Shown here one piece after another: positions 19,819 to 43,459 of a stretch of DNA of 64,000 nucleotides. Position 1 is the stretch's first letter; each line of letters begins with the position of its first letter. This DNA comes from Magallana gigas (lineage: Eukaryota), in NCBI RefSeq assembly GCF_963853765.1, contig NC_088858.1, positions 8,680,001 through 8,744,000 of the forward strand, in the 5' to 3' direction. The translations under genes and the position numbers were made by a program. The notes under the pieces are model-generated. The model saw nothing but the letters and a program-made list of their open reading frames with translations. It was not told the origin of the DNA and ran no database searches.

Positions 19819-22800
19819 ATGTTTTACCCACAACAAATGCTAAGTGTTATTATTGCTGGATTCATATCTGTCAAAGGTAAGTTAAGATATATTCTTGTAA
19901 AAGTCATTTACTCCTTCGCGTATGTTTTGTACATAGTTTTAAGAGAGGATGAAGCGTGTAATTTTTCAAGTTCTTACCTTTTTACCTCGATGGTTACTGC
20001 TTTTTTTTTAAAAAATGCCTGTGTTCCGGTATTATGTTAAGTTGAATTTTTAATGTTTTTTTGTGTGTGCGTATTTTTGTTTTCGGAGTGGAGCTTTTAA
20101 AACAGGAAAAGCAATTTACAGGCGTCTAGTGTCTAAATTCAATGCAGCGGTCTTGTGTTCAATTGTGATCGTTAACCCCAGTTATCTGTAACCAAGTGGC
20201 CAATTCTACACACACATGTCTTTCAACTACCGTCGAATGATGGAAACAATCAGGTTCCTGCTAATGCAGCATTAATTCTTAATCGTTATATTGCTTCATT
20301 ACGTTTATTGTGATATAACTACATTCCCCCCACACCAGAGTACCAACACGTGGTTCTTGTTACGACATTTGCACGTTCGTTACATATTTCTAGGTATCGA
20401 TGGACCAAGAAATCTGGTTTTCTCATCCAAGATTCTCACAGACCCTATTGACCTCATGTTGAACGCCAAAAAAAACCCACCATAATACCGACGAAATCAT
20501 CACATTCAGCTTAAAAATCGCTCTATGGGGTCTTGTTATATCGAAACTACAGAGAACTCGGGGGGTTTCTTCTCGTAAAGTGTCTAGATAGTATCAACGT
20601 TACTAAATTATTTGAATTTTTCAAATAAGTTTTAACAAAGTTATTTTTTGTATACGTACTCAAACAGATTTTTGTCTTGCTCGCCATGCCTCAGACGGAT
20701 TTTATTGAAACGCATGTTTGCAATTTATGAGGATATTCAAATTCTAATAAAAGTACTCTAATCCTAAAGGTTTGTCTTATTAAGTCTAGTATGTAAAATA
20801 AGAATTGTTAAGAGACTTTTAGATTATATCTAAAAGTATATATGGAGATAAAAGCTGTATAAGCAAAAGAGCTCGCACCTAGCCTAAGCCAAATTAACAG
20901 AATTCCGAACAGATAAGACACTCAACAAAAAACAATAACTGTATACCCTTTATCTGATAAGTAAACAACAAATCTCTTTATTTTGACTTTCGCTCGTGTA
21001 CCGTTTTCTAATTGGCATTTTTACATTCATGCCGACTGAATAAAAACCATCATCTGTTTCATTTATAAAACAGAAGCAAAGCCTTAAAGAGACAATTCTC
21101 TGAAGAAGCTAACAGAAAGAAATGACACCAAACTATAAAGATCAGAGGCGTTTTGTGGCCGTTTTATCAAAATACAATCCAAAGCAGCAGCTACCATTCT
21201 TAGAAGGGGCGTTTTCAAAAACGATCATCTCTTAGTCATCGCCTTATTATTCCCAGATATGTGTGTTAATAAGAGTAAAATTCTTCAGCCTTTGATATTG
21301 TGCATAATTAGCTGTTCTTCAAATGAGTCCAATGTTATGGTACTCGCCCCATTGTATTAATTGGTTTTCGGATTATTAGGGAGCTAATTGGACATGGAAA
21401 AATCAATTAGTCCTGGAACGAATCTACAGCGCGGTAATGAATACTCAATTTTATGACCGCCTATATCGAAATGAATAAAACCTCTTGTTCATTGGATGCT
21501 GGCTTTATGTCTTTACATACTGTTGCAACCAAATACATGTTTTATGTTCTTGTCGAAAACTATTTGCCTTACATCATACGCTGGCTTCTGTCAACCCAAT
21601 TTCGGAATTTTATTTCGTTTTGTAATCGATGTACGGGGGAATGTCGGGATAACATCTGATCTTGACCGCATGGGTTTGGTTGCTATTATCTACATCATTT
21701 GTCCTCGTGTATTACGAAACCATGGCTATAAATGACGTTATTACTTTGATCAGTCGACGGTATGTTTCCTATAATACAAATAATTCGTCTACTGCCTTAG
21801 CTTATTGCTGTATGTGATGCCATTTGATCGACAGAGGAGTATGCCCAGGCACTTAATAACTGCACCAAATGATATTTTTTATTAAATCATTTGTGTATAT
21901 AATTACCTACAGTATTCCTTAATGCCCACCAATCTAATCGATTAACTGAACGAGAGTTTGATGTACATTTTACAGAACAAAATATAAAAATATACTATAG
22001 GTACGCATGAATTGTTATGTAATTTTTCTGTAACAAGATATTTTGGCACTTATCCATTCAAGAGGTTTTTTTTTAAAACAAGGAAAACATAAAATTTTAA
22101 TGCTTCATACGAAAACGCATAATAATGATTCATCTCATTTCCTTCAGTGTTCACCACACACAAAACGTTGAAGGTATCAATTTCAAATTTTAATTACATG
22201 TTTATATATTATATTGATTCCCAAATTTTTCGATTGCTGCGCGAAAGGAAATGGAAAAAAAAATCTTAAGTCGCATATTTAATGGTGGGTGTCTCGACTG
22301 TAGTTTTCTTATAAGTTCTATATAGTACGAGAATAACGTCGGAGGCTGACTCATAACTCTGTGACCAGTTTGCTATCATTTACTGTTTGAGGTTTGGGTA
22401 AAATCGGCTCTTTCAGACATAACAAAACAGGAGTGTTTTGAATTAAGATTTGAAGATTTAACCTGGCGTTATTTACTGGCGTGGCACACTTTTAGAGGCT
22501 TGCGCCCCAGACAGATGGTTTCTTGGTTTCAACCACCGTTAAAGGCCGAACATTTTACAAACGCCCCCTTTTTTACCTGTACAAACTTCAAAATGATGCC
22601 GCTTGTCAATCAAGTTTGAAACAATAGCACCCAGTTTGATTGACGTGATTGTCCGAGCGTGATCTTGCCAGGTCCGCGGTTTTCTGTTTACTAGCAATTA
22701 ACAACGTGATCTTTGATATCTTCCGTCATGTATTAAAAAGGGGGGATTGAAAATTGATTTTTAAACATTACCAGTATTATGAAAAATAATTATTCAGTGA

Positions 22801-24306
22801 TTGAAAATACGCACAATTTATGTTTGAATTATGTTGAATGTGTGTGAGCTAATAAATTCCACGAAAATGCATGGACAGCTCCAAAACATATAAAATTTTC
22901 TTTTTACAACAAACGTACAATGTGCTACTAAAGCTATATTTACTGGTAATTCACTCAGTCAGAAGTTGGTGCATGTAAACGTCTCTCCATGGAAAACGAA
23001 CTCCATTAATTGTCGACGTATAATGGCTGTCTTTACATTCCACATTCTTACTGATCGTATGGTTTTCTTATACTATTATAATTGTTAAAATTAACTTTTT
23101 AAACATGCAATGTCAAGTGCTAAACACAATGTACTGAGTTATACTTTAATAGCAGAATTAATTTACTGCATTTTTTCATGTGCTTTGCACACGTGTGCTT
23201 AGAGAAAATTCGGACGACAATACCATTTCCGTATAAAATCGCTTCATATGGTCATTAGAACAATAAGATATTTAAACTAAGACCAATTCTGACTAATTCT
23301 CTATTTCCTGTGTATTAATTTGCCTCCTGTGTATAGTGATTAGCAGCGTTCATGACCGCAGGTAGACTGTGAGCCCCGGAGGCTTTCACACCTCTAATAA
23401 TTAAGCCCCGCCCTCACCTGAGATTTACCACCCGGTAAAAATGTTCGGCCTTTAAGGTGTGAAGAGATATAACTGAAACGTCATCGTATGTAATACCAAT
23501 TAACCTCCTCGTGTTTTCTCACCACACGCGAGATTTCAGACGAGATGGAATTCTGCTATGTAAACCTTGTCATGTTTTGTGATAATTAATTCGACAGACG
23601 ATAACTGGAATGCGCATCTTCACCCAAAACCTGTTCTAAGTATTGAAAAGTATCAATTTTCTACAAGCCTAATCTTCCAAGTTTTTGAAATATTCGAGTA
23701 TAGTAGGGTTTCCTGCAAATAGAGCAAAGAGGTGGTGTTTGTTGAAGGTTGATCATAACTGCACATGATATTCCGTTATATAATGTGTGTACATATCATT
23801 TCAGCTGCATGTAGTTATTTTACCCTTTATCTTGTTGCATTTAGTAAATACGACGTATTTTTGATGCGATATCGAATGTCTGATGCACATACATTTGACA
23901 TTTATGGTATATGTCTTATCATTTGAGGAACAAGTGATCGAAGTTGCATTTACCAAACATATGATATACAAAGATTATACAGTATGCCAAAGACTCAATT
24001 TTTCAACCGAGTCCATGCTTTACACAAGTAATACAGTGTGTCACAGACTGACTCCATTATTCAACCAAATCTATGACGTGCTTTACTGAAGTCAACTGCT
24101 GTTTATTAATAAGCTTGTTGGCACAGAAATCTGATGATCTATTACTTGTCTAAGAAAAAAACTTTGTACATTAAATCACGATTCATGAATGATTTAAGGA
24201 ACGAACTATTTTCAATGGTGATTCCTTTAAGACTAGGATGCTATAGGCTTGTTTAATAAAAGGACAAATGCCACGCTGTTAAGGAGGTTATTTATATACA
24301 TGTACA

Positions 24307-24376
<70 letters not shown>

Positions 24377-27300
24377 GAATAAGTCCTTGGTATAGGTAAC
24401 GATATAGAAAAATGTTTTCAGTAGACGATAACACAATAATCCATTTCTTTCAAATTAAATCCAGAGCGCTTTCGCCTGATCGGCTCTTCAGTGGATTTCA
24501 AATTATAACAGAAATAACAAACGTTGACGTCGTTATTATGACGTCATAAAGTAGACAACGTCACGAACAGTGTAAACAATGGGTGCTTTCCATTTAACCG
24601 GCATCGCCGGATTTGCCGGTGTTGCCTTCGTCGCCGATTGCTGGAACGCGCGTCGCCGGCGAGCGATTGTGGCAACGCAATATACCGTTGCTGATTAGGA
24701 AACAATATGGCGTCGATGTTATCATATTCTACAAAACTAGTATTTCTAAAACTACAATTTGTCGTACTACATTGAAATACATTAAAACTGCAAATAGCCA
24801 ACATTTTTGGATCAAATTTTAAGATAGGTATCAGTTTTAAGCTGCAATCGTCATCGTTGGATCATTGTGACGTTGCCAACCGTTCCATTAACGTCGCCGT
24901 TTCACGATAACGTCGCCGGCGAGGCAACGTAAATGGAAAGCGCCCTTTATTTGGAGATGGCGGCAAATATTTTTTACAAACACATGTAAACGTAATAAAA
25001 TATGTACAAATGATATTGTTTTAAAATAAGAGGTTATTGAAATGAAAGCTAAATAAAGTCAATGCAGAATAAATAATGCAATTATCGATTAAGTTTAGGT
25101 TTAAATTTTTTTATGAAATATTGTTCTTTTGCAAGTCGCAGCTGATCACTTTCCTCGCGGACTTTGTAAAATGGAAAAATTTCAAACCGGCCTCTCCCGC
25201 ACATATCAAAATGTTCACTACACGGAGTGTTACGAACAGAAGGATCCCTTATCTGCTGCTTATGTACCCTCACACGGTAGGCTAGTTTGGTCCCTGTTTG
25301 GCCAATGTAATTTTCTCCGCATCCATTACAGGTCATGCAATAAATGATGTTTTTAGATTTGCAGTTCATATTAGAGTTGACTTTGAAAACTGTACCGTTT
25401 TTAAATGAAATTGTTTGTCCTGTCTGAATATAGGCGCAAGTCCCACATCGAGAATCCTCGCATTTTGAAACCCGAAAAATTTCTTTAGTCGAAGTAAATT
25501 TGGCTCTTGTAAGAAGTTTTTTAAGGTTAGGGGGTTGTCGTCTGCTGTAGATAAGATTTTTTTCCTTTATAATATCCTTTAGAATTTTTGACTGATGTAA
25601 AATCGGTAAACAATGCCTCGTGGTATCGAAAATATTATGATTTCTAGGATTGTAGGTTACGACAAACAGGATCTCTGTGGAACTGTTTCCGGGTGTTTTC
25701 TCCCTGTTGAATTTTCGTAGTTCAGAAATAGGTACTTGTTTTGCATTTCGTATGGCTTCAGCCACAAGACCGTCGGGGTATTTTTGTCTACAAAGAAATG
25801 TTTTGAGTTCCTCCAATCTTTTGTTTCTTCTTTCTTCATTTGAAACTATTGTGCATATCCTTCTGGCCATATTAAATGGAATGTTGCGTTTCGTATGAGC
25901 AGGATGACATGAATTAAAAAGAAGGTACTGGTGACTGTCTGTTTTCTTGTAAAATAAATCGGTAGAAATATTGGTATTTTCCTTAATTATTAATACGTCC
26001 AAGAAGGGGAGCTCTTTCTCATTGGTTTCGATCGTGAATTGAATGTTTTCATGCAGATCATTGAGTAACTTGTGAAAATTTAATAAATCGTCGCGTGATC
26101 TGTTCCAAAAAATAAAACAGTCGTCCAGGTAACGCTTCCATTGATTTTTTATGTAATTTGCAAAATCATCTCCAAATATTTCATGGGTTTCAGCATACAT
26201 TTTTTCCTCAAGAAAGCCTAATACCAAGGTTGCATATGTTGGTGCAACTTTAGTGCCCATTGCCGTTCCTTTGATTTGTAAATAGTATTTATCGTCAAAA
26301 AAGAAATGATTGTTTTCAAGAATGAGTTGTAATCCTTCCAATATAAACTCTTTTGGAAATCTTTGGTCAATTTGGTGACCTTGCTTGTCCATCCAGAAAG
26401 AAATTGCTTCTAGCCCTAAGTTGTGCGGAATGTTCGTATAGAGACTAGTGACATCAAAGCTTACTAAAGTGGTGTTGTTTTCCACGGTTTTTGGTAAATG
26501 ATTTAGAAAGTCCATATCGTCGCGGATAAAACTGGGTATTGTATTACATAGTGGTTTTAGAATGATATCAATCAGGTTACTTAGTCTTTGTGTAGGGCAA
26601 GAGGGACCGGCAACTATTGGTCTGAGTTTTAAGTCTCCAGGTTGTGGTAATTTGATATAACTCGAATTTATTTTTTCCATCCCGTCTTTTAGTTCCTTTG
26701 ATTTGTGAATTTTAGGAAGTCCATAAAAATTACTATTCTTTGTTTCAAAGTTGACCAGATAATCCATTTCTTTTTCAGTCAAGTGATTTTCAAATTTTTT
26801 AGTGAATCGTTTAATTTTGTTCATGGTTTTACTGACTTCACACTCCTCAATTTCTCTATAGAAATGACCATCGTTGAGTTGTTCGAGGATTAATTTGTTG
26901 TAGTGTTCTTTATCCAGTATCACAATGGTTCCTCCTTTATCCGCTTGTTTAATTATAATGGAATCGTCTTCTATAAGACTTTGAATTGCATTACGTACTT
27001 GACTGCAAATATTGTTTTTTACTGGAACGTTGCTTTCATTAGTATGCGCTGCACTTTTAAGACAATGTATATATTCCTCTAAGTGTTTATCCCTATTTGG
27101 ATTAGGCTTAAACTTACTTCTGTTTTTCACTAGAGATACATCCGTGCTATCAGAGTCCTGAAAAAATTCCATCAGTCTTAGTTTACGGCAGAATTCTTCA
27201 GTGTCTTTGATAAGATCTGTGGTATTTCTTTGCGGCGTTGGCGTAAACTTAAGTCCCTTTTCTAGAAGTTTAATTTCAATTTCAGTAAGATCCCTTGATG

Positions 27301-30300
27301 AAATATTGATGATGTGGGGATCTATGTCCGTGTCTTCTCTTTGACTTAATGCCACCTGAGATTGTGTGTTTTGTGACGACCTTTGTGATACGGTCCTTTC
27401 TACAAAAAATGATTGGGGTTGGTATTTTGTTGATGGTTTTGATAGCTATCTGAATTTGATCGTTCACTGCGAGATCTATCCTCATTTTGTTGACGTTCAT
27501 TAGTATGTGAATGACGTGTTGGACCATGGGCTGGGCTTTGAGATTTCCTTGTCTGGGGGCTGGTGTGCCGTGTATTGTTACTCGAGTGACCTCTGTTCAA
27601 TCTTCGTGTATCATTTTTTTGATGGCCCGTTGTTCCAACTACATCAGCGTACGTTCTTCCGGTCAATTGCTTCTCCTGTTGTTTTGCAGTTTGTTCCTGC
27701 TTGCTGCTGTTTTGTTTTCTTTCCTGTTTTGGTTTATGTTTAGATTTCACTGTCTCACTTCCATACGTTTTTTCATATTCTTCCAACCACTTACGTTTCT
27801 TATCCAAAATCTGTTCCGACTTAGCAGCTTCACGGGAGATCTCTTTTTGCCATAGATCTTTGAGTTGGTCTTTTATCTCGCCGTCTATTCTTTGCTCTAT
27901 AATATTCTGAATGTCTTTGTCACATTTGTCGTATTTTGTTTTGTATTTAGGGATCCGAATGCGGAGCAGGGTGATTTCTGCTTCCATTTTCTGCAGAGCT
28001 AGATTAACTTTAATCTTTGTTTCTTCTTCCGGTTCATTTCTTACACTTTTAACCCTATATTTCATAGGAAGGATGATATTCTCTCCCTGTTTCCATTGTT
28101 TGTATGTGTTCGCTAAATGTTCACTCCGGATTGCATTCCAGTATGCTTGTTTTCTTTGATTCAGAAGATTGTTCCATTCAGAAATTAGTTCCTTCTTCTT
28201 TTTAAAAACTTCACTTTGTGAATCAAATATATTGCGATTTTCTAGCAAAATGTCGACATTTGTTCTTGGTAGGTTGTCATCGTTCAAACATGATTGAAAA
28301 ACTCCCTTTTCAAATCCAAAGTTATACTGACTTATAATTGTGTCGAGTTTTCCGTCACAAGAATTAAGTTTGTCCTCTAACTTTACACATAACTCGGAAA
28401 GAATTCCTACCTTCGTATCCAAATTAGCAATTTTGCTTGTAATTTCCTCTAAGACGTTGTCGTGATTGTTTGTAGATTTCGATCTTGTTTGTGTCATCCT
28501 CTTCATATACCAGATATTAAATATAAAAACGAATAAGTCCTTGGTATAGGTAACGATATAGAAAAATGTTTTCAGTAGACGATAACACAATAATCCATTT
28601 CTTTCAAATTTAATCCAGAGCGCTTTCACCTGATCGGCTCTTCAGTGGATTTCAAATTATAACAGAAATAACAAACGTTGACGTCGTTATTATGACGTCA
28701 TAAAGTAGACAACGTCACGAACAGTGTAAACAATATTTGGAGATGGCGGCAAATATTTTTTACAAACACATGTAAACGTAATAAAATATGTACAAATGAT
28801 ATTGTTTTAAAATAAGAGGTTATTGAAATGAAAGCTAAATAAAGTCAATGCAGAATAAATAATGCAATTATCGATTAAGTTTAGGTTTAAATTTTTTTTA
28901 TGAAATATTGTTCTTTTGCAAGTCGCAGCTGATCACTTTCCTCGCGGACTTTGTAAAATGGAAAAATTTCAAACCGGCCTCTCCCGCACATATCAAAATG
29001 TTCACTTCACGGAGTGTTACGAACAGAAGGATCCCTTATCTGCTGCTTATGTACCCTCACACGGTCGGCTAGTTTGGTCCCTGTTTGGCCAATGTAATTT
29101 TCTCCGCATCCATTACAGGTCATGCAATAAATGATGTTTTTAGATTTGCAGTTCATATTAGAGTTGACTTTGAAAACTGTACCGTTTTTAAATGAAATTG
29201 TTTGTCCTGTCTGAATATAGGCGCAAGTCCCACATCGAGAATCCTCGCATTTTGAAACCCGAAAAATTTCTTTAGTCGAAGTAAATTTGGCTCTTGTAAG
29301 AAGTTTTTTAAGGTTAGGGGGTTGTCGTCTGCTGTAGATAAGATTTTTTTCCTTTATAATATCCTTTAGAATTTTTGACTGATGTAAAATCGGTAAACAA
29401 TGCCTCGTGGTATCGAAAATATTATGATTTCTAGGATTGTAGGTTACGACAAACGGGATCTCTGTGGAACTGTTTCCGGGTGTTTTCTCCCTGTTGAATT
29501 TTCGTAGTTCAGAAATAGGTACTTGTTTTGCATTTCGTATGGCTTCAGCCACAAGACCGTCGGGGTATTTTTGTCTACAAAGAAATGTTTTGAGTTCCTC
29601 CAATCTTTTGTTTCTTCTTTCTTCATTTGAAACTATTGTGCATATCCTTCTGGCCATATTAAATGGAATGTTGCGTTTCGTATGAGCAGGATGACATGAA
29701 TTAAAAAGAAGGTACTGGTGACTGTCTGTTTTCTTGTAAAATAAATCGGTAGAAATATTGGTATTTTCCTTAATTATTAATACGTCCAAGAAGGGGAGCT
29801 CTTTCTCATTGGTTTCGATCGTGAATTGAATGTTTTCATGCAGATCATTGAGTAACTTGTGAAAATTTAATAAATCGTCGTGTGATCTGTTCCAAAAAAT
29901 AAAACAGTCGTCCAGGTAACGCTTCCATTGATTTTTTATGTAATTTGCAAAATCATCTCCAAATATTTCATGGGTTTCAGCATACATTTTTTCCTCAAGA
30001 AAGCCTAATACCAAGGTTGCATATGTTGGTGCAACTTTAGTGCCCAATGCCGTTCCTTTGATTTGTATTTATCGTCAAAAAAGAAATGATTGTTTTCAAG
30101 AATGAGTTGTAATCCTTCCAATATAAACTCTTTTCGAAATCTTTGGTCAATTTGGTGACCTTGCTTGTCCATCCAGAAGACGATTCCATTATAATTAAAC
30201 AAGCGGATAAAGGAGGAACCATTGTGATACTGGATAAAGAACACTACAAAAAATTAATCCTCGAACAACTCAACGATGGTCATTTCTATAGAGAAATTGA

Positions 30301-33300
30301 GGAGTGTGAAGTCAGTAAAACCATGAACAAAATTAAACGATTCACTTAAAAATTTGAAAATCACTTGACTGAAAAAGAAATGGATTATCTGGTCAACTTT
30401 GAAACAAAGAATAGTAATTTTTATGGACTTCCTAAAATTCACAAATCAAAGGAACTAAAAGACGGGATGGAAAAAATAAATTCGAGTTATATCAAATTAC
30501 CACAACCTGGAGACTTAAAACTCAGACCAATAGTTGCCGGTCCCTCTTGCCCTACACAAAGACTAAGTAACCTGATTGATATCATTCTAAAACCACTATG
30601 TAATACAATACCCAGTTTTATCCGTGACGAAATGGACTTTCTAAATCATTTACCAAAAACCGTGGAAAACAACACCACTTTAGTAAGCTTTGATGTCACT
30701 AGTCTCTATAAGAACATTCCGCACAACTTAGGGCTAGAAGCAATTTCTTTCTGGATGGACAAGCAAGGTCACCAAATTGACCAAAGATTTCCAAAAGAGT
30801 TTATATTGGAAGGATTACAACTCATTCTTGAAAACAATCATTTCTTTTTTGACGATAAATACTATTTACAAATCAAAGGAACGGCAATGGGCACTAAAGT
30901 TGCACCAACATATGCAACCTTGGTATTAGGCTTTCTTGAGGAAAAAATGTATGCTGAAACCCATGAAATATTTGGAGATGATTTTGCAAATTACATAAAA
31001 AATCAATGGAAGCGTTACCTGGACGACTGTTTTATTTTTTGGAACAGATCACACGACGATTTATTAAATTTTCACAAGTTACTCAATGATCTGCATGAAA
31101 ACATTCAATTCACGATCGAAACCAATGAGAAAGAGCTCCCCTTCTTGGACGTATTAATAATTAAGGAAAATACCAATATTTCTACCGATTTATTTTACAA
31201 GAAAACAGACAGTCACCAGTACCTTCTTTTTAATTCATGTCATCCTGCTCATACGAAACGCAACATTCCATTTAATATGGCCAGAAGGATATGCACAATA
31301 GTTTCAAATGAAGAAAGAAGAAACAAAAGATTGGAGGAACTCAAAACATTTCTTTGTAGACAAAAATACCCCGACGGTCTTGTGGCTGAAGCCATACGAA
31401 ATGCAAAACAAGTACCTATTTCTGAACTACGAAAATTCAACAGGGAGAAAACACCCGGAAACAGTTCCACAGAGATCCCGTTTGTCGTAACCTACAATCC
31501 TAGAAATCATAATATTTTCGATACCACGAGGCATTGTTTACCGATTTTACATCAGTCAAAAATTCTAAAGGATATTATAAAGGAAAAAAATCTTATCTAC
31601 AGCAGACGACAACCCCCTAACCTTAAAAAACTACTTACAAGAGCCAAATTTACTTCGACTAAAGAAATTTTTCGGGTTTCAAAATGCGAGGATTCTCGAT
31701 GTGGGACTTGCGCCTATATTCAGACAGGACAAACAATTTCATTTAAAAACGGTACAGTTTTCAAAGTCAACTCTAATATGAACTGCAAATCTAAAAACAT
31801 CATTTATTGCATGACCTGTAATGGATGCGGAGAAAATTACATTGGCCAAACAGGGACCAAACTAGCCGACCGTGTGAGGGTACATAAGCAGCAGATAAGG
31901 GATCCTTCTGTTCGTAACACTCCGTGTAGTGAACATTTTGATATGTGCGGGAGAGGCCGGTTTGAAATTTTTCCATTTTACAAAGTCCGCGAGGAAAGTG
32001 ATCAGCTGCGACTTGCAAAAGAACAATATTTCATAAAAAAATTTAAACCTAAACTTAATCGATAATTGCATTATTTATTCTGCATTGACTTTATTTAGCT
32101 TTCATTTCAATAACCTCTTATTTTAAAACAATATCATTTGTACATATTTTATTACGTTTACATGTGTTTGTAAAAAATATTTGCCGCCATCTCCAAATAT
32201 TGTTTACACTGTTCGTGACGTTGTCTACTTTATGACGTCATAATAACGACGTCAACGTTTGTTATTTCTGTTATAATTTGAAATCCACTGAAGAGCCGAT
32301 CAGGCGAAAGCGCTCTGGATTAAATTTGAAAGAAATGGATTATTGTNNNNNNNNNNNNNNNNNNNNNNNNNNNNNNNNNNNNNNNNNNNNNNNNNNNNNN
32401 NNNNNNNNNNNNNNNNNNNNNNNNNNNNNNNNNNNNNNNNNNNNNNNNNNNNNNNNNNNNNNNNNNNNNNNNNNNNNNNNNNCTGTAGCTCCCGGTCTGA
32501 AAAAATTCGGATGGACGACCTGGGAGCTACAGTGCCTCCCATAGTAAAAAACTGCAATTTACGGCGCACAAAAAAATGCGCTAGGTTTTGACTGATTAAT
32601 CTCATCTACGATCACATTCTGTACAAATATTTAATCCCAAAAAATTCCTCGGACATTTTACTACATATATTGTCACTTCACTTGCCTCTGATATTCTTTT
32701 AAACACCATCCCCCGCCTTGTCAATTAAAAGTGGTGCATGTTTGTTTACATTTAAAAATGGCGACTCTCGATCTCGACGTAAATTAACATACTTCATTTT
32801 CCGAGGTCGGTTATCATGTTTAAGAGAAGGTCTGAGGCAATTAAAGTGATGATATCAGTAGTAAATTTGCTGAAGAATTTTATGGTTCTAATTATTTTTA
32901 CAGAATTTGTGTGAAAATAAGGTCAATAAGTCCAAACTTAGCGCAATTTTTTGTGCGCCGTAAATTGCAGTTTTTTACTATGGGAGGCACTGTAGCTCCC
33001 AGGTCGTCCATCCGATTTTTTTCAGACCGGGAGCTACAGTCCTGCAGCTACTTATGAACCAGCAAAGATTACTTTTTAAGCACTTAATCTTTTTATTCGA
33101 TAGAAAGAATACCAATTCCCCCACGTCTAGACGTTTTGATAGAGAACTAGGATCTAATAATTGTGATTTTATTGAAGAATTCGTGGATTTCGTGCATGCA
33201 GAGGACCTTCAATGCAAAAAAACAAAGCACAAAAAGCCTCAATACACAAAACGATAACGGTGGTTTTGGAGTACGTAAATCTTTGCATTAATACGACCTT

Positions 33301-34195
33301 TTTCTTGTATTTTTGGAAGGTGAAAGGGTTCATAAAATCAATCTACTTCAGTATCTTTCATCTAAGCTGAGAATTTTCACCAAAAAGAAAGGGCACCAAG
33401 CAGGTGCGATATGTGCGAACGTTCCGGAGATAACAACGTTCCTTCCAGAAATCTCTACTATATTTCCAAAGTGATGACATCAAAATGCATGCTCGTCATC
33501 ATGTTCGCATATAGGGATGGAAAACAAATAAACAAAGTTTTCTATTTTTGAGAAAAAAAAAAATTAATGCAATGATACTACATTCATGTAATCTCCAACG
33601 AATGTCGGCTAGACAAATCTTGTTTAGATGCCAACCCCATTTGCAGATGTAAAAAGCACACAGCAAATAGAAGCTCAATTCTCGAAAAAATGGACATTTA
33701 ATGTTCTATTCCGACTGGTTTGTCCTGTAATCAACTCAAGGCAGTGGTAGGGGGTGCACGAGTGAAGTTACGCTATAATCTCTCTTCAAGACACCAAGAA
33801 AGTACGAATCGTGCATGGAATATTTTCTTACCATAACGAAAACCGGTGTAAATTATTCGAGAACAGTTATATATCCAAAGATTAAGCACAACACAGCGCG
33901 TTAAGAATTCACGGTATTCTTTCAATTTTTGATCTATATTATTTACCAGCTCTGGGGTTAGACGTTTTTTCTTTATCTCTAGATCCATCTCCAGACATAA
34001 GACGTGATCAGGATACAGGCTCTATATAAACTCAAATCTCTCAATTTACTCAGTTGATGTTGGTTTTTTGAAATAGTTGATTTCAAATATATTTTTGTTA
34101 GGTTGTTACTTTAAAGTGACAGAAAATATAAAAAACAAACAAATTATACATCCCCGCGAATAGAAATATTTACAAAATTACTTGTATTAAGAAGC

Positions 34196-34245
<50 letters not shown>

Positions 34246-37200
34246 ATAAATCTCTCTATATCGATCTTTTCAGCACAAGTCATCCAGCCCATCAACGTAA
34301 CGGGAGCCGCCGGGACTCAGGTTACCCTGCCATGTCAAGTCAGAAATGTCGGCCTATATGATAGTGTAAGTATTGATCATCGTTGTATGTTATCAACAAC
34401 TTGTACGTGTAATGAACTAGTATTACATGTAATAAACGAGTGTTACACGTAATAAACTAGTATTACAAATTACAAACGAGTCTTACCTGTGGGGACATAT
34501 TACAATCCAGTTTGACTTCTTGCAATAGCTGCTATACAATTAAACTCATCATAAAAGAATAATAAATACATGTGTTAGTATTTGATTTTCAAACTAGTCT
34601 TGGCGATTTTAAATGTGTATGGCATATTATATACGAAATGAATATTACCACATCACACATGCAATTTATAAATTGTATTGAGTTCTTACATGTAAGAAGC
34701 AAATATAATGCATGACAAATCAAAGCTGTTATCAAAAGTCAAATTACAGTTTACCATTGTAAAATATATAATTATAAACTGATACAATGTATTTTCAAGG
34801 TTGTGTGGCAAGGGTCCTATCAAGAGCCAATATCGGTCAACGACAGAATAGTAGCCATGGAATCCATGAAATACGAAATCAAACAAAAGCACAGTGGTGA
34901 CTGGAGTCTGACCATATCCAATCTAAAGTCCTCAGACCAAGCAAGATACACGTGCATGAAGGGTGCAACAGAGGTCCAGGTTGTGGACCTTTGGATCAAA
35001 GGTATCAAACTTATTTATAGACGATACTTATGTCTATATTATAAATAATGTATTGTTTGTCAATAATTTCAAATACACTAATTTCGAGACACCGAGACAG
35101 TGGAAAATAGACATCTATTTTATTTGAAGTTAAACTTTGCAAGTATGGATGGTACTTGCAAAACGTTAGTTTACATACTGCATTGCTAGGCAAATGCCAT
35201 GGAAACGTCCAATGTTAACTTTGAACATATAGAAATTGTTAATTTGATAACCAACAATATCTTTCAAAATGTTATTGATAGACCTCTTATATAAAGAGAA
35301 TGTACAAACTCAGAATAAAATCGTTGTGAGTCTTGGTTTTATAACTGTCTGTGTTTTAGCACCGCCACGCATACTGGACCAGAACAAGACAATCGATTCG
35401 TTTGTGGGGGAGACCGTCATGCTTCGTTGTCAGGTCACGGGGATCCCCCCACCCACGGTCAAGTGGTACAAGGAAATTATGGACAGCGGAGAAACAATTC
35501 GTGAAGGTAGACATGCTATCATTTATCATTATTACTGTAAATACTAACTGAAATATAATGTCACAACAACAGCTTACTTATAATAGAAATGTTTCAAACT
35601 GCCAGTTCAACAGAGGACATAAATAAATCATTTAGTATGAAATAGATAAGAACTAGAAGCAATCTTGAAACAAGTATTTATTGTTGTGATTATTCATTGA
35701 TGTTATTATTAAAACACGAGGAATCGGTCAAACACAATATAGATATTGAAAGTGCAGTACAATACAGCGTACATGACAAAATATAGATAGGTAGAAAAAT
35801 TTACAAAAGATGAACTTCAATAAATAAAGATAAATTAATCACAGTGAAATATACAATATGTAAATTGTACATGTTATGCGACGACTACGTGTTCTTTTAA
35901 ATAACACAAATATTAAAAGTACTAAAATATCTTTACATTTTGTTTTGTAGACCTCGGAATAACAGGCGCCTATTTCTCTTTGACACTGTCTGAGGACTCT
36001 GGAGGAATTTACATCTGTCAGGCAGATAATGGAATTCAACCCAAGGCAGACAGACACTTCCGCATCAGTGTTGAATGTAAGGTTTATGTTCTTTAGATAA
36101 AGGTCCCGGAACAGCAGTGTTTGATGTGTAAAATAATAAGACAGATCTTTACTGTAAATACATCACTCTTGCAATGGTGTCCTTGCATGCTGTATGTTAT
36201 AACAAAGTAAATTTATGGAATCTATTGATACACAGCAACTGCTAGATAAACTGCAGTGTATATTACTGTTGTGCAACTCAAAACGTCAAAAAGAATTTGG
36301 TTAAATACACCGTTCAGTTATTTTCACTACCATCAAAAAACAGTTTTCTTTTTAGTAGTAGGGTAAAAGCCCAATACAGTCTTTGTTGAACTGAATGAAA
36401 TTTATATTTTATTTAATTTTGTCATTGACAGTAATGCCAATCATAACAGTGTCCATGAAACAAATAAAACAAGAGCAAGGGAAACCTACCAGGCTACAAT
36501 GTATGGTAGAAGGACATTCTCTGGGTAAAGTAAAGTGGTTTTACAAGGGGAGGCGAATTGTAAGAGACGACCGAATCACCTTCTCCGCCCACAACACCTC
36601 ATCCAATGTCGTCACCTACTTCATGGCCATCCAATCTCTGGAGTCTGGGGACTTCGGTATTTACACCTGTAAGGTGTCCAACAACGCTGGAAGTGCGGAG
36701 GCCCAGGTTGAACTCGTTGAAATACTTCCGGGTAAGAGTCTGGAAGACAATGCTATTAAAGGCATACTGATATCCTATAGTAGTTTTGCCCCCCCCCCCC
36801 CCCCCAATACTTTTATCTAATCAAAATGAATATCAAAATATAAATTATTGATTGAATGTTTCAAAAATAAATCCAAAGTATCCTAAAGAACGTGGCTGCT
36901 GTGTTTTTAGTTCAATAACTTTAAGAAATTTCAACTTTGTTTGGTTAACAGAGATAAAAGCAACAAGATGTGAGAAACTGAACAATGAACACTGTGTTGG
37001 CATTCTACAGTCCAATTTCACATTGTTTCCGAACAGTCGAGGGGACAAAACTCTAGAAGAAGCTTCAGTAATGTTTGAACAATCTTTCGTCGTAGTCAAA
37101 AGTACGTGTAGTAAATACTTGCTGCCGTTTCTCTGTGGGACCTACTTCCCGCCCTGTGTTAATGACAGCATTATTCCACTGTGTCCCTACCTCTGTGACC

Positions 37201-39867
37201 ACAGCCAAGCCGGCTGTATGGAATCATTTAAGAAATACGGAACCACGTGGTCATATAACTGTATAGACTCTTACCATCAGCTTAACAAAAGCAAAGAATG
37301 TTTAGGAATCAGTGGGGTCGAAAAAATAGGTAAGACAATAGGTGCCATATACTGTAGATAATCCTATTCTTTAACTTGTAATTTGAAGTTCATGTATTTT
37401 TAGAATATAAACTGTTTAACACTTCTCTAAACATGTTTGATTAATTAAGGAACGTGTTTAAGGATGAAACATGTGAAATGTTTTAGAGCTAAACATATTT
37501 TTACACTTTACTGAATGTTTTAATCATGTTTTATGAAAAGTCAAAAATACGACTTTTTTTTGTCATGATATCAATCTAACCTCTTTTGCATATTTATTTT
37601 CCTGAAGTATTGGTAGATTGATGAAAATATTTGAATTTCTTTTTCAGCTCCATATATCAAAGTAACTGATGTGTCTGACGACCAAGTTCTACAAAAAGGA
37701 GACAAACTAAATTTACACTGCAACTTCATATCTAATACTGACTATACCATTAAATGGTACAAGATCAGCAAGAATTCGTACATCTCTCGACCGGAGAAAA
37801 ACGAAGGTAACCAATTTGACAACGTTTCTTCCATGAAGCATAACCTTCAGATGATGCAATTTTAAATTCCATTCTAGCATTTTTGCCAAAGATAAAATTA
37901 CTCATGATCAGATACGTATCTGTCTGTGATGAAGATTCTTCTCTATACAAACAAATACAACGAAAAACTATATGATACGGTCGCACAGATAAAATGTAGA
38001 ATCAACATTTCTTATCAATTTTTAGTTGGAAGCGAGGAAAATTATGCAATAGGAAGCGTAAAGGACGCTGATGCTGGAGTGTATGTTTGTGAAGCTTCGA
38101 ACACCGCGGGAGTGACAGATTCAAGAAATATAACGGTGGACGTAGAATGTGAGTATTATCTGTAAACTCAAGCATTCCATGCGCATAAAAACAACCCGCA
38201 GAGGTACATGTCATACGCAAAACAAACGACTGTGCTCTGAAAGAGCGGCATTCCCTAAAAAATAATACATTATATGTTAAAAGATGAAGATTTCACCGCT
38301 GTGAAATGATAACCAAATTAGTTGATTCATTGTGGGCAATTTTTTTATTCTTCTGGTATTTCCCTTGTTTCTTGTGTGACATGCAATGAATGGAATGCTA
38401 TTAAATTAAGTAGGATTTTTTTTTTTGATTTAAAACAATCGTATTTAGCTAAGAAATGTGTCGCAGGATAAACAAACATAGTACACCTGCTATTTTTTTT
38501 TTCTTTTAGTCGCTCCTAAAGTGACCATTCAGCCAGAGGTGGCTCTAATGACCGGACTGGACATGATCCTTAAATGTGACGTTCAAGGAAATCCCCCGCC
38601 AATCGTCACATGGAGCAAAGGGACCAGAAAGTTGTCCACGGGGCGACAGATGCACACTAAATACTCTTTTACTTATACATTGAAACTAGCAGACATGAAT
38701 GTAGCCCATTTAGGAAAATATAACTGTTCTGCTACAAATATTCTAGGAAGTGACTTTGGAATAACATCAGTAAAAGGTAGATATATGAATTTTTCATGAA
38801 AACTAAATAAATATTTTTAAAGAGCAATAAGAGAACGGAATGAATGCAGTATTTTATACCATATTATACATTGTATTTCACTATCTCGCAAAAAATAAAA
38901 GTGGTCCATTATAGTTTGAAATAATTTGCTCTCACGTTAATTTAGGCATTTGGAATATTCCACCTTGGTTATATAGTTAACACTTGTATTGTCTCGTGAT
39001 TTTTATTAGATTATGGCAAACCAATGAAAGAATCAAAGCCAGAATTCGAAGTTATTTCATCAAATTCAACAACTAAAACAACACCACAAGACACTCAGCC
39101 AGAAACTCAGCCAAATAGGGAGAGCAGCACGGCGCAAATAGCTGGGGGTGAGTGGAGGACATACAGCGTATTGTTGTTTTGAAATGTTTAGAGCTACGTT
39201 TTACGAGTATTTTATTTATCTAAAGAACTGTGGCTCTACGGGAATTCCGGGTTGATGGACCTAGTGTGGGTTTTTTTTTAACTGTGCATCCCTTGCTAAA
39301 AATTTGAAGGGATGTAAATATCCACTTGAGATTCGATACTTAGGTGGCCGATGTGTTACGTTGGCCTTTTTTGTACGCCAAGTTATTACTAATTTTTTGT
39401 TTAGGGTAAAAAATGATTGCTAGGCAATAATTATTATATTATGATTATTCTAATCATGGATTAAGAATAATGGAAGGACAGTATTGACCATTTGTTTTTC
39501 ATGGATTTGCGAGAAAGTTTTAAAAATCTTCTTCTACGATGTATTTTCTTATAATCTAATGAAAATTTATTTTGAAAAAAAAAATGTGTCTAGGGCATTT
39601 ATACGTTTGGTTGAAACAAAGAACATGCAAATGCAAAAACCAGGCGCCATGGCTTATTTCTTTATTCGATTTTTGTTTGCATGCCATAAAAGATAGGATA
39701 TTATGCAATACGTAAATGTGCAATTGCTTTGACCATTAACATATTTTTATTTGTATTTTGCAGAAAAATCGAGAGAGAGCCAGGCTGTTACGAATCAATG
39801 TCAGACTTCATATTTGTTCTTCTCTTTATTACTAACTATATTTACAATGAAAGTATTACATCACTAA
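19819..39867 (+). CDS. Secreted, probably GPI-anchored Ig-superfamily protein with an internal Frizzled cysteine-rich domain (SP-Ig3-Fz-Ig2-stalk-GPI), ~697 aa
   Basis: Exons 19819-19876, 34274-34365, 34800-35001, 35360-35506, 35951-36076, 36432-36731, 36952-37329, 37648-37806, 38026-38148, 38510-38776, 39010-39147, 39764-39867. All are GT-AG with compatible phases; total 2094 nt with no internal stop. Ig motifs (L-x-C, W, Y-x-C) occur 5 times. The 36952-37329 exon has the 10 Cys of a Fz CRD (FLCGTYFPPC). N-terminus MFYPQQMLSVIIAGFISVKA|Q; hydrophobic C-terminus YLFFSLLLTIFTMKVLHH*. Exon 1 lies 14.4 kb upstream (Kozak GACCATG, donor GTAAGT) and is the least certain join. Confidence 0.85.
24310..24372. 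repeat. (TA)n microsatellite abutting the 3' end of the Penelope-like element
   Basis: Pure TA run directly followed by AAACGAATAAGTCC, which is also found inside the element at ~28527. Confidence 0.95.
24458..24497 (-). ncRNA. Minimal type-I hammerhead ribozyme (copy 1, 3' pseudo-LTR)
   Basis: Minus strand reads AATCCA-CTGAAGA-GCC-GATCA-GGC-GAAA-GCGC-TC-TGGATT: core CUGANGA and GAAA, helix I AATCCA/TGGATT, helix II GCC/GGC, palindromic helix III AGCGCT, CUC cleavage triplet. Confidence 0.9.
24581..24945. mobile_element. 365-bp MITE (possibly PIF/Harbinger-like) inserted in the 3' pseudo-LTR of PLE copy 1
   Basis: TIR GGGTGCTTTCCATTTA / TAAATGGAAAGCGCCC (16 bp, 1 mismatch, imperfect to ~30 bp). 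The empty site GTAAACAAT|ATTTGGAG is seen at ~28726-28742. No clean TSD (3 extra T on the right). Confidence 0.85.
25082..27409 (-). CDS. Penelope-like reverse transcriptase + Cys-rich linker + GIY-YIG endonuclease (intact ORF2, likely reached by -1 frameshift from ORF1)
   Basis: ORF track gives 757 aa from a GTG at 27355, but the frame is open up to ~27445. PLE N-terminal motif IINISSRDLT..LLEKGLKFTPTP; RT motifs SFDVTSLY, GTAMG, RYLDD; linker CEDSRCGTC; endonuclease IIYCMTCNGCGENYIGQT, then H..H of the CCHH motif. Confidence 0.95.
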   Translation of the reverse strand, partial: FFVERTVSQRSSQNTQSQVALSQREDTDIDPHIINISSRDLTEIEIKLLEKGLKFTPTPQRNTTDLIKDTEEFCRKLRLMEFFQDSDSTDVSLVKNRSKFKPNPNRDKHLEEYIHCLKSAAHTNESNVPVKNNICSQVRNAIQSLIEDDSIIIKQADKGGTIVILDKEHYNKLILEQLNDGHFYREIEECEVSKTMNKIKRFTKKFENHLTEKEMDYLVNFETKNSNFYGLPKIHKSKELKDGMEKINSSYIKLPQPGDLKLRPIVAGPSCPTQRLSNLIDIILKPLCNTIPSFIRDDMDFLNHLPKTVENNTTLVSFDVTSLYTNIPHNLGLEAISFWMDKQGHQIDQRFPKEFILEGLQLILENNHFFFDDKYYLQIKGTAMGTKVAPTYATLVLGFLEEKMYAETHEIFGDDFANYIKNQWKRYLDDCFIFWNRSRDDLLNFHKLLNDLHENIQFTIETNEKELPFLDVLIIKENTNISTDLFYKKTDSHQYLLFNSCHPAHTKRNIPFNMARRICTIVSNEERRNKRLEELKTFLCRQKYPDGLVAEAIRNAKQVPISELRKFNREKTPGNSSTEILFVVTYNPRNHNIFDTTRHCLPILHQSKILKDIIKEKNLIYSRRQPPNLKKLLTRAKFTSTKEIFRVSKCEDSRCGTCAYIQTGQTISFKNGTVFKVNSNMNCKSKNIIYCMTCNGCGENYIGQTGTKLAYRVRVHKQQIRDPSVRNTPCSEHFDMCGRGRFEIFPFYKVREESDQLRLAKEQYFIKKFKPKLNR
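27400..28506 (-). CDS. PLE ORF1: 368-aa protein with N-terminal coiled coil and basic, low-complexity C-terminus
   Basis: Uninterrupted ORF. First AUG downstream of the ribozyme is at 28506 (MKRMTQTRSKS). Heptad-like LEEITSKIANLDTKVGILSELCVKLEDKL; R/S/Q/N/H-rich tail. Function is inferred only. Confidence 0.8.
   Translation of the reverse strand: MKRMTQTRSKSTNNHDNVLEEITSKIANLDTKVGILSELCVKLEDKLNSCDGKLDTIISQYNFGFEKGVFQSCLNDDNLPRTNVDILLENRNIFDSQSEVFKKKKELISEWNNLLNQRKQAYWNAIRSEHLANTYKQWKQGENIILPMKYRVKSVRNEPEEETKIKVNLALQKMEAEITLLRIRIPKYKTKYDKCDKDIQNIIEQRIDGEIKDQLKDLWQKEISREAAKSEQILDKKRKWLEEYEKTYGSETVKSKHKPKQERKQNSSKQEQTAKQQEKQLTGRTYADVVGTTGHQKNDTRRLNRGHSSNNTRHTSPQTRKSQSPAHGPTRHSHTNERQQNEDRSRSERSNSDSYQNHQQNTNPNHFL
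28612..28651 (-). ncRNA. Minimal type-I hammerhead ribozyme (upstream pseudo-LTR), helix II variant GCC/GGT
   Basis: Same motif as 24458-24497, but the plus strand reads CTTTCACCTGATCGGC, turning the G-C pair next to the core into G.U. Confidence 0.85.
28868..30178 (-). pseudogene. 5'-truncated, disrupted PLE RT-EN copy 2
   Basis: Near-identical to copy 1 from FWMDKQ onward. 7-bp deletion at ~30068, TGT>TGA at 29007-29009, extra T at ~28892-28899. Confidence 0.9.
30175..32065 (+). pseudogene. 5'-truncated inverted PLE RT-EN copy 3
   Basis: Starts at EDDSIIIK (~aa 128 of ORF2). An A>T change creates TAA at 30347-30349; the remaining 566-aa frame is open to 32065. Confidence 0.9.
32282..32321 (+). 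ncRNA. Minimal type-I hammerhead ribozyme (copy 3)
   Basis: AATCCA(32282-87) CTGAAGA(32288-94) GCC GATCA GGC GAAA(32306-09) GCGC TC TGGATT(32316-21); predicted cleavage after C32315. Confidence 0.9.
32347..32482. other. Assembly gap (136 N)
   Basis: Run of N. Confidence 1.
32483..33044. mobile_element. ~560-bp MITE with ~100-bp TIRs, each TIR containing its own hairpin
   Basis: 32483-32585 is the reverse complement of ~32937-33039 with few mismatches. Each arm has CTGTAGCTCCC...GGGAGCTACAG. Right terminus GAGCTACAGTCCTG; the left few bases are in the gap. Confidence 0.9.
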
Positions 39868-40045
39868 CAATCTATACATGAAATTATTCCACAAGTGCCA
39901 TATATTACACAAATATCACGTCCTTCGTGCGTTGTACAAATTTTTATCTAATTTAATCATTACGATTTTTGCATAGTTAATGCATTGCATAAAAATATAT
40001 GAAGTATTAGATATGGTCGTTCATACATGTACTTGTACAATCATT

Positions 40046-40168
40046 CTGTCATGTTGTAAATTTTGGATTTACCGAGTGTACGTAAATACAAAATGTACAA
40101 GTTAGTTGTCATGTTGTAAATTTTGTATTTACTGCCACCAGGTAAATTCAAAATTTACAACATGACAG
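40046..40168. repeat. 123-bp miniature inverted-repeat element just 3' of the Ig-Fz gene stop
   Basis: Perfect 20-bp IR CTGTCATGTTGTAAATTTTG (40046-40065 / 40149-40168), extending to 29 bp with 1 mismatch, plus an internal direct copy at ~40108. Confidence 0.75.
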
Positions 40169-41678: not shown

Positions 41679-43459
41679 ATGTCTGGCACACGAGTTCTTG
41701 TAGCCATGGATGGCAGTGAAAATTCCGCTATGGCGTTGAAATGTGAGTATAAACCTTGTCTTCTCGTATTTTATTGTGAGACATGTTAAACTGTATGCTA
41801 ATACGTGCATACATGATGTATGCAAAACATTTTTATATAAAGGACAAAAATCTATGGCAGGTGCTCGTTCTAATTCTAATTGCCATCAAACAAGGCATCG
41901 CAAATTAGGACAAATCGTGATTAGATTTAGATATGAAGATTGACATTTGAAAAAGTTTTTAACTTATATATTGTAAAAACTCTCTGAAAACATGATTCAT
42001 GTGGAGTAATAATTTCAAACGGCCTTTGTTCGTGTTATCTTATCCTTGGTCAAGATTGTTTATGAATGAACATTTTTAAATAAGAAATAGAAAATACAAA
42101 ACACACCATGGGGGGAAAGCCGGTATAAATAGTATCTTTATCTGACTTACTCGGCACTTGTATACGATAAATGATCCTACAGTCACGTTCAATTACCTCT
42201 GCGAATCATCAACTACTCCAACGAACAGAAACATGCGGTTTTTATTCTCATCCGCTGAGTATATTATGTGTAAAACCCTGTTTTCCAAAAATTAAAATAA
42301 GTTAAATTCATTTTTCTCACGCCCTAAAGTATAGCTAACTTTACACATGATTTTTCTTTTTTTTAAAGAATTTTCAATGGTGTACTATTTCTATGTTCAT
42401 ATAAATATTTATCTCCTGAATCTGTTAGAGTCATTACACGGCATATATTGTGCATATTTTGACTTCGAAATGATTGACAACTGTCTGGTGTTTTCAGATT
42501 ACGTGGAGAGTATTCACAAGCCAGGGAACTATGTGATACTGGCTCACTGTGCAGAGTACCTGAACCTTAACTATGGAAGTATGTACACATATAATATACA
42601 CCATAAATACCACAGGACTAAACGCCTTATCAATCTGTCATTTACTTGCAAATCATTCCAATCATGATTGGAGCATGTTGTTTCCAGTTCTTTGATGGTC
42701 GTCTAATTTGTGTTAGTGAAAAATATTTCCCATGTAGCAAACAGTTACTTGACCAAATTAGCGGAAGGCGGATGTAATGTAATGATATCCCGTACATACT
42801 CTTTTTCTGAGTGCCATCCTGTTATATGGTTACAAAGATACACTGCGATTGACGTGCACTGATTTTGGTTTGCAGTGGTTTCGTTGTCCCAGGCAGACCC
42901 TTCCGTAGTGGAGAGAACAATAAACGAGGAGGAAAAACGAATCCACACCCTCATCGAGCATTTGAACAATATTCTAAAAACTCACAATGTAAGTCACCCC
43001 CTTTTTCAACTTCACATGATTTTCAAAAATATTTTTTTATGATCTAGTTACATGTACCTATTCACTAGTATTTAGATAATGGTACATGTAACCGTCAGTC
43101 TTTTCTTCATAGAATTTTAGCCAAAGACATTATTTTACATATATTAGAAGGAAAAAGGGAAGTTAAGGTGGTTAATGATACCATGTATATCAAATGTTCC
43201 TAAATTATCATTAAGAAAGAGACAACCTACGTTTCAGATGACGGGAGAAGTAGTCCGGATACAGGGAGGTGATCCGGGTCACCAGATTGTGGAAAAAACC
43301 AAAGAGATGAACGTGGATTTCCTAGTAACCGGGTCACGTGGTCTGGGGAAGCTCCGGCGGACGTTGATGGGGAGTGTCAGTGATTACCTGGTTCATCACG
43401 CCCACATCCCTGTCATGGTGTACAAACATACGGACAAGGTGCACGACAAACACCAGTGA
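41679..43459 (+). CDS. Universal stress protein A-like (USP copy 1), 159 aa
   Basis: Exons 41679-41742, 42498-42578, 42876-42988, 43238-43459 (480 nt, in frame). VLVAMDGSENS; VILAHC; ATP-binding motif VTGSRGLGKLRRTLMGSVSDYLVHHAHIPV. Confidence 0.92.

Follow-up and report, generated by a model that had tools for sequence, protein, structure and literature searches.

Immunoglobulin (Ig) domains and the Frizzled-type (Fz) cysteine-rich domain (CRD) are known to share an ectodomain in receptor kinases: MuSK has three Ig domains followed by an Fz-fold CRD, a transmembrane (TM) segment and a kinase, and Ror/CAM-1 has an Ig domain, an Fz CRD, a kringle, a TM segment and a kinase. Proteins of the IgLON/DIP/lachesin group have exactly three Ig domains, together with a signal peptide, a glycosylphosphatidylinositol (GPI)-type signal and no cytoplasmic part; IgLONs and DIPs are GPI-anchored. 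The Fz-domain architectures covered in the reviews consulted are FZD, SMO, the sFRP group (secreted Frizzled-related proteins), MuSK, ROR, corin, CPZ and COL18A1 (PMC6938638). Here we describe a gene of the oyster Magallana (Crassostrea) gigas, referred to below as the Ig-Fz gene, which lies in a stretch of 64,000 nt (C6:8680001-8744000, the window) of a 564 Mb genome in 29 contigs. The gene is real and expressed, and it encodes a cell-surface Ig-type protein that has an Fz CRD in mid-protein and is without a kinase.

From its N-terminus, the protein consists of a signal peptide, three Ig domains, a ten-cysteine Fz CRD, two further Ig domains, a mucin-like, Ser/Thr/Pro-rich stalk and a short hydrophobic tail. 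An earlier sequence-only reading of the window had proposed the order from the first Ig domain to the tail, and all of its coordinates were confirmed by the spliced model, Pfam and the transcript. The spliced model of exons 2-12 has AG/GT borders throughout and a single open frame of 677 codons ending with TAA at 39865-39867. It is identical, with zero differences, to residues 21-697 of the 697-aa RefSeq protein XP_011420494.3, which is automatically named 'cell adhesion molecule DSCAML1' and was formerly named 'hemicentin-1'.

The gene has 12 exons, all on the + strand. Exon 1 (19566-19876) lies 14.4 kb upstream of exon 2, was placed by alignment of transcript contig L014, and comprises the 5' untranslated region (UTR) and coding positions 19819-19876. 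It encodes the signal peptide MFYPQQMLSVIIAGFISVKA, given for these coding positions as MFYPQQMLSVIIAGFISVK(A), and ends in phase 1. Exons 2 (34274-34365) and 3 (34800-35001) together encode Ig1, a V/I-set-like domain recognized by Pfam as V-set/I-set halves; the joint 34365>34800 was present in RNA. Ig2 is encoded by exons 4 (35360-35506) and 5 (35951-36076), each in phase 1-1 and each matching an Ig_3/I-set half, with the joints into exon 4 and between exons 4 and 5 seen in RNA. Exon 6 (36432-36731), also phase 1-1 and joined in RNA, encodes Ig3 (I-set, E = 1.4e-16). The complete CRD is encoded by exon 7 (36952-37329), Ig4 by exons 8 (37648-37806) and 9 (38026-38148), which match Pfam Ig halves and are joined in RNA, and Ig5 by exon 10 (38510-38776; I-set, E = 7.9e-16). 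Exon 11 (39010-39147) encodes the stalk and has no Pfam match, and the coding part of exon 12 (39764-39867) encodes a candidate omega site S-Q-A, a spacer of 8-10 residues and the hydrophobic tail, with the joint 39147>39764 present in RNA. All module borders are in phase 1, and every domain unit is phase 1-1 when the two exons of Ig1 are counted together.

The transcript evidence spanned the whole gene. Logan contig L014 matched all 12 exons at exact borders and ran colinear with the genome for at least 222 nt past the stop codon. Every GT..AG joint was present in the reads or contigs of four RNA runs, two of which consisted of stranded poly-A raw reads, and no alternative joint leaving exon 11 was found in the reads and contigs of these runs. 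A search with the Saccostrea protein returned dozens of intron-free Logan contigs, 2.5-3.2 kb in length and containing the complete open reading frame (ORF), i.e., assembled transcripts. As all joints occur within one transcript, the locus is not two merged genes. The number of exons given in the sequence-only reading, 12, was right, with each splice joint seen in the transcript and in RNA-seq; the twelfth, however, is the signal-peptide exon, beyond the range originally given. Candidates for exon 1 obtained by scanning the 14 kb before exon 2 for signal peptides proved false, and the true exon was located via the N-termini of an orthologue and a transcript. In the RNA data, reads with loose ends at 34272 carried the end of exon 1. 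A (CT)n microsatellite of ~46 nt (34200-34245) lies ~28 nt before the exon 2 acceptor, and reads seem to be cut there. In two RNA runs (X2 and X20), the stalk exon occurred with a divergent allele over its first 38 nt (39010-39047), visible as a joint 38776>39048 enclosing 32 different letters.

Domain content was assessed with Pfam both exon by exon and on the whole protein. In the first search, exons 2-6 and 8-10 matched whole Ig domains or parts amounting to half of one, and exon 7 alone matched an Fz domain (PF01392); the second yielded five I-set stretches and one Fz domain. Neither the exons nor the full protein gave a Pfam match to a kinase (PF07714, PF00069), kringle, NTR (PF01759), seven-transmembrane (7TM; PF01534) or TM domain. 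The Fz match of exon 7 scored 58.3 bits against a Pfam cut-off of 32.1 (E = 1.3e-15). Its ten cysteines are at positions 6, 14, 52, 61, 68, 77, 81, 88, 103 and 116, with spacings of 8, 6, 3 and 6 (C-X8-C-X6-C...C-X3-C-X6-C), which is the canonical pattern (CnCnCX8CX6CnCX3CX6-7CnCnC, PMC6938638). The sequence-only reading was thus correct that a complete ten-cysteine Fz domain is contained in a single phase-1/phase-1 exon of 378 nt.

The stop codon lies 33 codons into exon 12 and is followed by a colinear 3'UTR (39868-40089; L014 aligned to 39763-40089). The M. gigas tail has a hydrophobic run of 13-15 residues followed by the terminal residues KVLHH, and its best 19-residue Kyte-Doolittle mean (KD-19) is 1.36. 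By this measure, the run falls below the value generally required of a helix that spans the membrane and appears short for one. On inspection, the same layout was found in all seven oyster sequences: a small triplet, a polar spacer of 8-10 residues, 13-21 uncharged residues, and at most five residues after them. The candidate omega triplet is S-Q-A in six of the seven and N-K-A in the seventh. Such a layout is that of a GPI-attachment signal. The GPI-type tail proposed from sequence was therefore upheld insofar as the ORF stops after a short hydrophobic tail and the layout is kept in all orthologues.

The type of the CRD was determined from sequence and from predicted structure. The best sequence matches in the PDB were the CRDs of FZD8, FZD7, FZD5, FZD2 and FZD1 (E = 4e-13 to 4e-10, with FZD8 at 4e-13), followed by FZD4, FZD3, FZD6 and FZD10, then sFRP3 (4e-6) and Smoothened (>0.008). 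At E <= 1, the PDB matches included no MuSK or ROR CRD. An AlphaFold2 model of the CRD, built on an alignment of 46 CRDs, had a mean pLDDT of 87 and a pTM of 0.82. When this model was searched with Foldseek, the top 38 PDB matches were all CRDs of FZD8, FZD5, FZD7 and FZD2 (root-mean-square deviation, rmsd, 1.6-2.8 Å), with sFRP3 next; FZD8 (5un5_A) matched at E = 5e-9 and an rmsd of 1.8 Å over 104 columns. Sequence and fold matches therefore identify the CRD as of the Frizzled-receptor type and not of the MuSK/Ror type. Like Frizzled receptors and sFRPs, it has ten cysteines and a conserved N-x-T sequon after Cys2; unlike them, the protein has no 7TM or NTR domain.

The closest relative of the CRD is encoded next door. 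The nearest Fz exon in the oyster genome (42% identity, C6:8677122-8677496, - strand) lies just before the window and belongs to a DMBT1-like gene (XP_034326687/8) that encodes an N-terminal Fz domain followed by at least ten SRCR domains, with no Ig domain and no hydrophobic tail, unlike the Ig-Fz protein. The first coding exon of this gene is within the window (8641-8748, - strand), which makes the pair divergent neighbours, their 5' ends being separated by 10.8 kb. In the neighbour, the Fz exon is 375 nt long, phase 1-1, and has the same borders as the 378-nt exon of the Ig-Fz gene, with the 3' border at the same residue; the identity of the two CRDs is 39-42%. In an IQ-TREE phylogeny of 47 CRDs, the seven Ig-Fz CRDs formed a clade (support 99/93) that was sister to the SRCR-associated Fz CRDs (99/90), and the CRDs of oyster Frizzled receptors and of other phyla were placed elsewhere. 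A FastTree phylogeny of 174 rows agreed with this placement. Ten short CRDs that fell close to the family in the phylogeny were mostly metagenome fragments, the others including a Tegillarca protein and a Hydra protein, and they have no bearing on its distribution.

A symmetric phase 1-1 exon with a sister exon of the same borders next door supports duplication or shuffling of the CRD exon between the two neighbours, which could have occurred in either direction. The exon shuffling of an Fz module suggested by the sequence-only reading thus gained a probable partner in the 375-nt exon. We also considered whether the neighbour is a duplicate of the same architecture and rejected this, as a tblastn search of the 40 kb upstream with the entire protein returned the Fz exon only and the neighbour is an Fz-SRCR gene. 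If the proposed origin is right, the two loci offer a clear and rather recent example of exon shuffling, in which one symmetric Fz-CRD exon is common to two adjacent divergent genes of otherwise unrelated architecture.

The N-terminal half of the protein resembles the IgLON/DIP/lachesin group, as had been proposed. Ig1-3 aligned end-to-end with Drosophila DIP-eta, DIP-theta and DIP-alpha (E = 5e-25 to 2e-22; for DIP-eta, query 6-286 with 20-307 at 5e-25), with neurotrimin (query 7-283 with 22-288, E = 4e-14) and with IgLON5 (E = 3e-11). Titin, DSCAM, Robo and contactins were matched only through repeated I-set similarity, and Ig1-2 of MuSK were out of register, aligning only to oyster Ig2-3 or Ig4-5. 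The three colinear N-terminal Ig domains, the signal peptide, the candidate GPI-type signal and the absence of a cytoplasmic part are all shared with the IgLON/DIP/lachesin group, whereas the Fz CRD, two more Ig domains and the stalk of 50 residues are additions of the oyster protein. Neither the Ig3 exon nor the Ig5 exon had a close paralogue in the oyster genome, where the best matches had 29-37% identity, and the Ig-Fz gene is single-copy, its Ig and Fz parts having no near paralogue at other loci. As there is no close Ig paralogue, the resemblance to IgLONs and DIPs is taken as one of alignment and not as evidence of orthology.

The ligand-binding surface of the CRD was examined residue by residue. 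The fatty-acid channel of FZD8 is lined by Gln71, Phe72, Pro74, Ile78, Met122, Tyr125, Phe127 and Pro130, with Trp129 (PMC6873803), and at the equivalent positions of FZD4 single alanine changes in the groove abolish the effect of Wnt5a (PMC5458758). Positions were mapped via a HMMER alignment and via a MAFFT alignment that included Frizzled CRDs of the oyster itself. At the eight positions, the residues of M. gigas and other Crassostrea are Q, S, V, S, F, Y, T and S. Gln71, Tyr125 and Trp129 are thus kept, and half of the channel residues are small and polar (Phe72, Ile78, Phe127 and Pro130 replaced by Ser, Ser, Thr and Ser); Leu121 is likewise replaced, by Ser or Thr. By comparison, all five receptor-like oyster Fz CRDs (L015, L017, L019, L020 and L021) keep Phe72, Pro74 and Phe127; a sixth oyster CRD in the residue table, L022, is divergent. 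A second Wnt contact site, reported to comprise Tyr48, Phe86, Leu147, Met149 and Asp150 (Janda et al. 2012), also differs at its two aromatic residues. Tyr48 and Phe86 are replaced by Ser/Thr and Pro/Gln, respectively, in the whole Ig-Fz family and in the neighbour, whereas Tyr48 is present in all five and Phe86 in four of the five receptor-like oyster CRDs. With a half-polar channel and without Tyr48 and Phe86, canonical two-site Wnt capture by the M. gigas CRD appears unlikely. The Wnt-binding role that the sequence-only reading had envisaged is accordingly weakened for this species.

Taking these results together, the explanation that we modestly favour is that of a GPI-tethered Ig recognition or adhesion protein of oyster-restricted origin, bearing a non-signalling CRD module that has moved away from two-site Wnt capture. 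The mature protein would be held on the outer face of the cell by the predicted GPI anchor, with the Ig domains as the putative recognition or adhesion part and the CRD as an added ligand-binding module that would be unable to signal alone. In the Crassostrea/Magallana lineage, the CRD would have moved away from canonical two-site Wnt capture, and it more likely binds another hydrophobic or protein ligand, or Wnt weakly, than acts as a Frizzled-like Wnt trap.

Several points weigh against this explanation. The GPI-type anchor is a candidate signal, read from the layout of the tail by a rule of thumb. In Saccostrea and Ostrea, the tails are longer (16-21 uncharged residues, KD-19 1.9-2.2), such that a very short-tailed type I anchor would be possible there. 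Adhesion through the Ig domains is a putative role, proposed from their resemblance to adhesion molecules. The residue assignments hinge on aligning sequences that are 31% identical. Finally, the CRD is under purifying selection (see below), and Saccostrea and Ostrea keep Phe72 (Leu in S. echinata), Phe127, Trp129 and Pro130, so that an ancestral capacity to bind lipid or Wnt is conceivable and may have persisted.

Foremost among the alternatives is a membrane-tethered Wnt decoy or co-receptor, in which the CRD would capture palmitoleoylated Wnt as Frizzled and sFRP do and the GPI-linked Ig scaffold would hold it at the cell surface. At least 10 Wnt loci are present in the oyster genome. Analogues exist for such a role. 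The C. elegans CAM-1/Ror ectodomain can sequester Wnt without its kinase. RECK and glypicans modulate Wnt availability, RECK binding WNT7 through its cysteine-knot region. These two are, as is predicted for the oyster protein, surface-tethered and non-signalling with an Fz-fold module; their remaining architecture is unrelated, and no sequence relation was found. RECK is a known case of a GPI-anchored Wnt modulator that has an Fz-like CRD (PMC6338448, PMC12842694). The proximity of the CRD to FZD8, FZD5 and FZD7 in sequence and fold, the purifying selection, and the residues kept in M. gigas (Gln71, Tyr125, Trp129) and in S. cucullata and Ostrea (Phe72, Phe127, Pro130) are in line with this alternative. 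We nevertheless regard it as rather unlikely, given the polar replacements in the Magallana/Crassostrea channel, the sensitivity of the FZD4 groove to single substitutions, and the loss of Tyr48 and Phe86 in every family member.

We are about as doubtful of a combined version, in which the CRD exon was duplicated between the neighbours and gave rise to an adhesion protein, GPI-tethered and IgLON-like, with the additional ability to capture a lipidated ligand, be it Wnt or another acylated or sterol-like signal. If this version is true, the protein would couple cell-cell recognition to morphogen availability and represent a type of Wnt co-receptor or decoy undescribed in any animal, and the difference between a kept channel (Saccostrea, Ostrea) and an eroded one (Crassostrea/Magallana) would mark a recent change of ligand.

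An immune role, in which the CRD and Ig domains bind microbial or environmental ligands as part of a lineage-specific bivalve pattern-recognition mosaic, is improbable in our estimate. The sister CRD is the N-terminal domain of a protein that has at least ten SRCR domains and is encoded by the divergent neighbour. This fits such a role, as do the restriction of the gene to one lineage and its rate of change, which is fast for a developmental gene (57% identity between genera, with the stalk fastest). However, the gene is single-copy with no expansion, its dN/dS of 0.15-0.28 gives no sign of an arms race, and its Ig domains resemble those of neural adhesion molecules.

We consider it similarly improbable that the protein is not GPI-anchored and is instead a type I membrane protein with a cytoplasmic stub of 2-5 residues or a secreted matrix protein with an unprocessed tail. 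The longer tails of Saccostrea and Ostrea point in this direction. So does a predicted isoform X1 of Ostrea edulis (XP_056022777.1, 780 aa), in which five tandem 24-residue stalk repeats replace the hydrophobic tail and which is possibly a soluble form of the orthologue. The short hydrophobic run and low KD-19 of M. gigas, the small triplet at the expected distance in all seven sequences, and the GPI anchoring of the closest three-Ig relatives speak for the anchor.

A MuSK/Ror-like kinase with missed TM and kinase exons, or a merger of two genes, is hardly credible: the order of three Ig domains and then Fz is that of the MuSK ectodomain, but the CRD is of another type with two Ig domains after it, the transcript and reads run on colinearly into the 3'UTR and show no alternative joint out of exon 11, an identical endpoint at the tail is found in RefSeq models of four oyster species and in many Logan ORFs, and the ORFs downstream in the window are Usp-domain exons. 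For these reasons, we conclude that no TM or kinase part is hidden. RNA was examined for transcripts running into TM or kinase exons and for a split into two genes, and neither was seen. The absence of kinase and cytoplasmic exons reported from sequence thus stands, whereas any link to MuSK or Ror does not: the CRD matches FZD8, FZD7 and FZD5 (~1e-13), no MuSK or ROR CRD matched at E <= 1, and the MuSK Ig domains are not colinear. Ror/CAM-1 shares Ig and Fz in one ectodomain, and by Pfam its kringle, TM segment and kinase are absent from the oyster protein. In an ESM Atlas feature search, a cluster of ROR2 fragments was nearest (0.89), a lead only, as this value is below the level that counts.

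The distribution of the protein was narrow. An exhaustive HMMER search with the Fz exon recovered a Saccostrea protein of 690 aa in which the Fz domain has the same position, and RefSeq predictions exist in four oyster species: M. gigas, Saccostrea echinata, S. cucullata and Ostrea edulis. The Saccostrea and Ostrea orthologues are 687-692 aa long and have the same tail end; Crassostrea transcript contigs carry ORFs of 689-691 aa counted from a conserved Met, which also finish at this tail. The searches with the CRD and with the full protein found full-length relatives only in Ostreidae (Crassostrea/Magallana, Saccostrea and Ostrea). Among the 150 best CRD matches, the only other Ig-bearing proteins were uncharacterised predictions from amphioxus (five Ig and three to four Fz domains) and starfish (four Fz domains and Ig). 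These Branchiostoma and Acanthaster proteins had no kinase domain by Pfam where scanned. As their CRDs are not sister to the oyster CRD, Ig-Fz mosaics arose more than once.

Selection was estimated pairwise against transcripts of three other Crassostrea. The dN/dS was 0.15-0.28 overall and 0.09-0.26 for the CRD, indicating that the gene is under purifying selection. The stalk was the fastest-evolving part (dN/dS 0.27-2.0, based on few sites; 33-73% identity among oysters). Between oyster genera, identity was 57% overall and 46-73% by domain.

In the full-text literature searched, we found no paper on this protein or architecture and no occurrence of the RefSeq accession, and a survey of lophotrochozoan frizzled-related genes (PMC4669655) does not mention an Ig-Fz protein. 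The statement in the sequence-only reading that the combination is not known therefore holds for the literature searched. It does not hold for databases, where the architecture is already predicted in four oysters under misleading names ('DSCAML1', 'hemicentin-1', 'titin-like') that hide the Fz domain, nor does it take account of the other kinase-less Ig-Fz mosaics in amphioxus and starfish. A kinase-less, probably GPI-anchored protein with Ig domains and a CRD would be an addition to the described Fz-domain architectures. In addition, the contrast between the channel kept in Saccostrea and Ostrea and the half-polar one of Crassostrea/Magallana constitutes a natural experiment on the ligand of an orphan CRD. 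Interest is tempered by the fact that the gene is lineage-restricted, already predicted in databases and composed of common modules, with a function that is predicted only.

The window has an even GC content of ~34% along its whole length. Intron 1 (19877-34273, 14.4 kb, + strand) contains several Penelope-like retroelement copies according to the ORF list, as well as an assembly gap of 136 N (32347-32482). Among them are an ORF of 757 aa for a reverse transcriptase-endonuclease (25082-27355, - strand) and an ORF1 (27400-28629, - strand); two partial copies in opposite orientation are at 29007-30047 (-) and 30365-32065 (+). Beyond the 3' end of the Ig-Fz gene, two exons for the C-terminal half of a universal stress protein (Usp) domain (PF00582) are found at 43175-43456 (+, E = 6.5e-17) and 53991-54329 (+, E = 1.4e-14), which probably belong to two tandem Usp genes.

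Elsewhere in the genome, at C5:18201974-18215660, at least eight exons for Fz domains, some of them with stop codons, follow one another in tandem within 14 kb. This is probably a multi-CRD gene like those for the proteins of shrimp, corals and others with 4-15 CRDs that topped the CRD search. At its end, the 3'UTR of the Ig-Fz gene enters a 55-nt inverted repeat (40046-40168; 87% complementary, 13-nt loop). RNA depth over this repeat was ~1700, compared to 40-400 on the exons, and opposite-strand joints were present there; the repeat looks like a member of a MITE-like (miniature inverted-repeat transposable element) family transcribed from many places.

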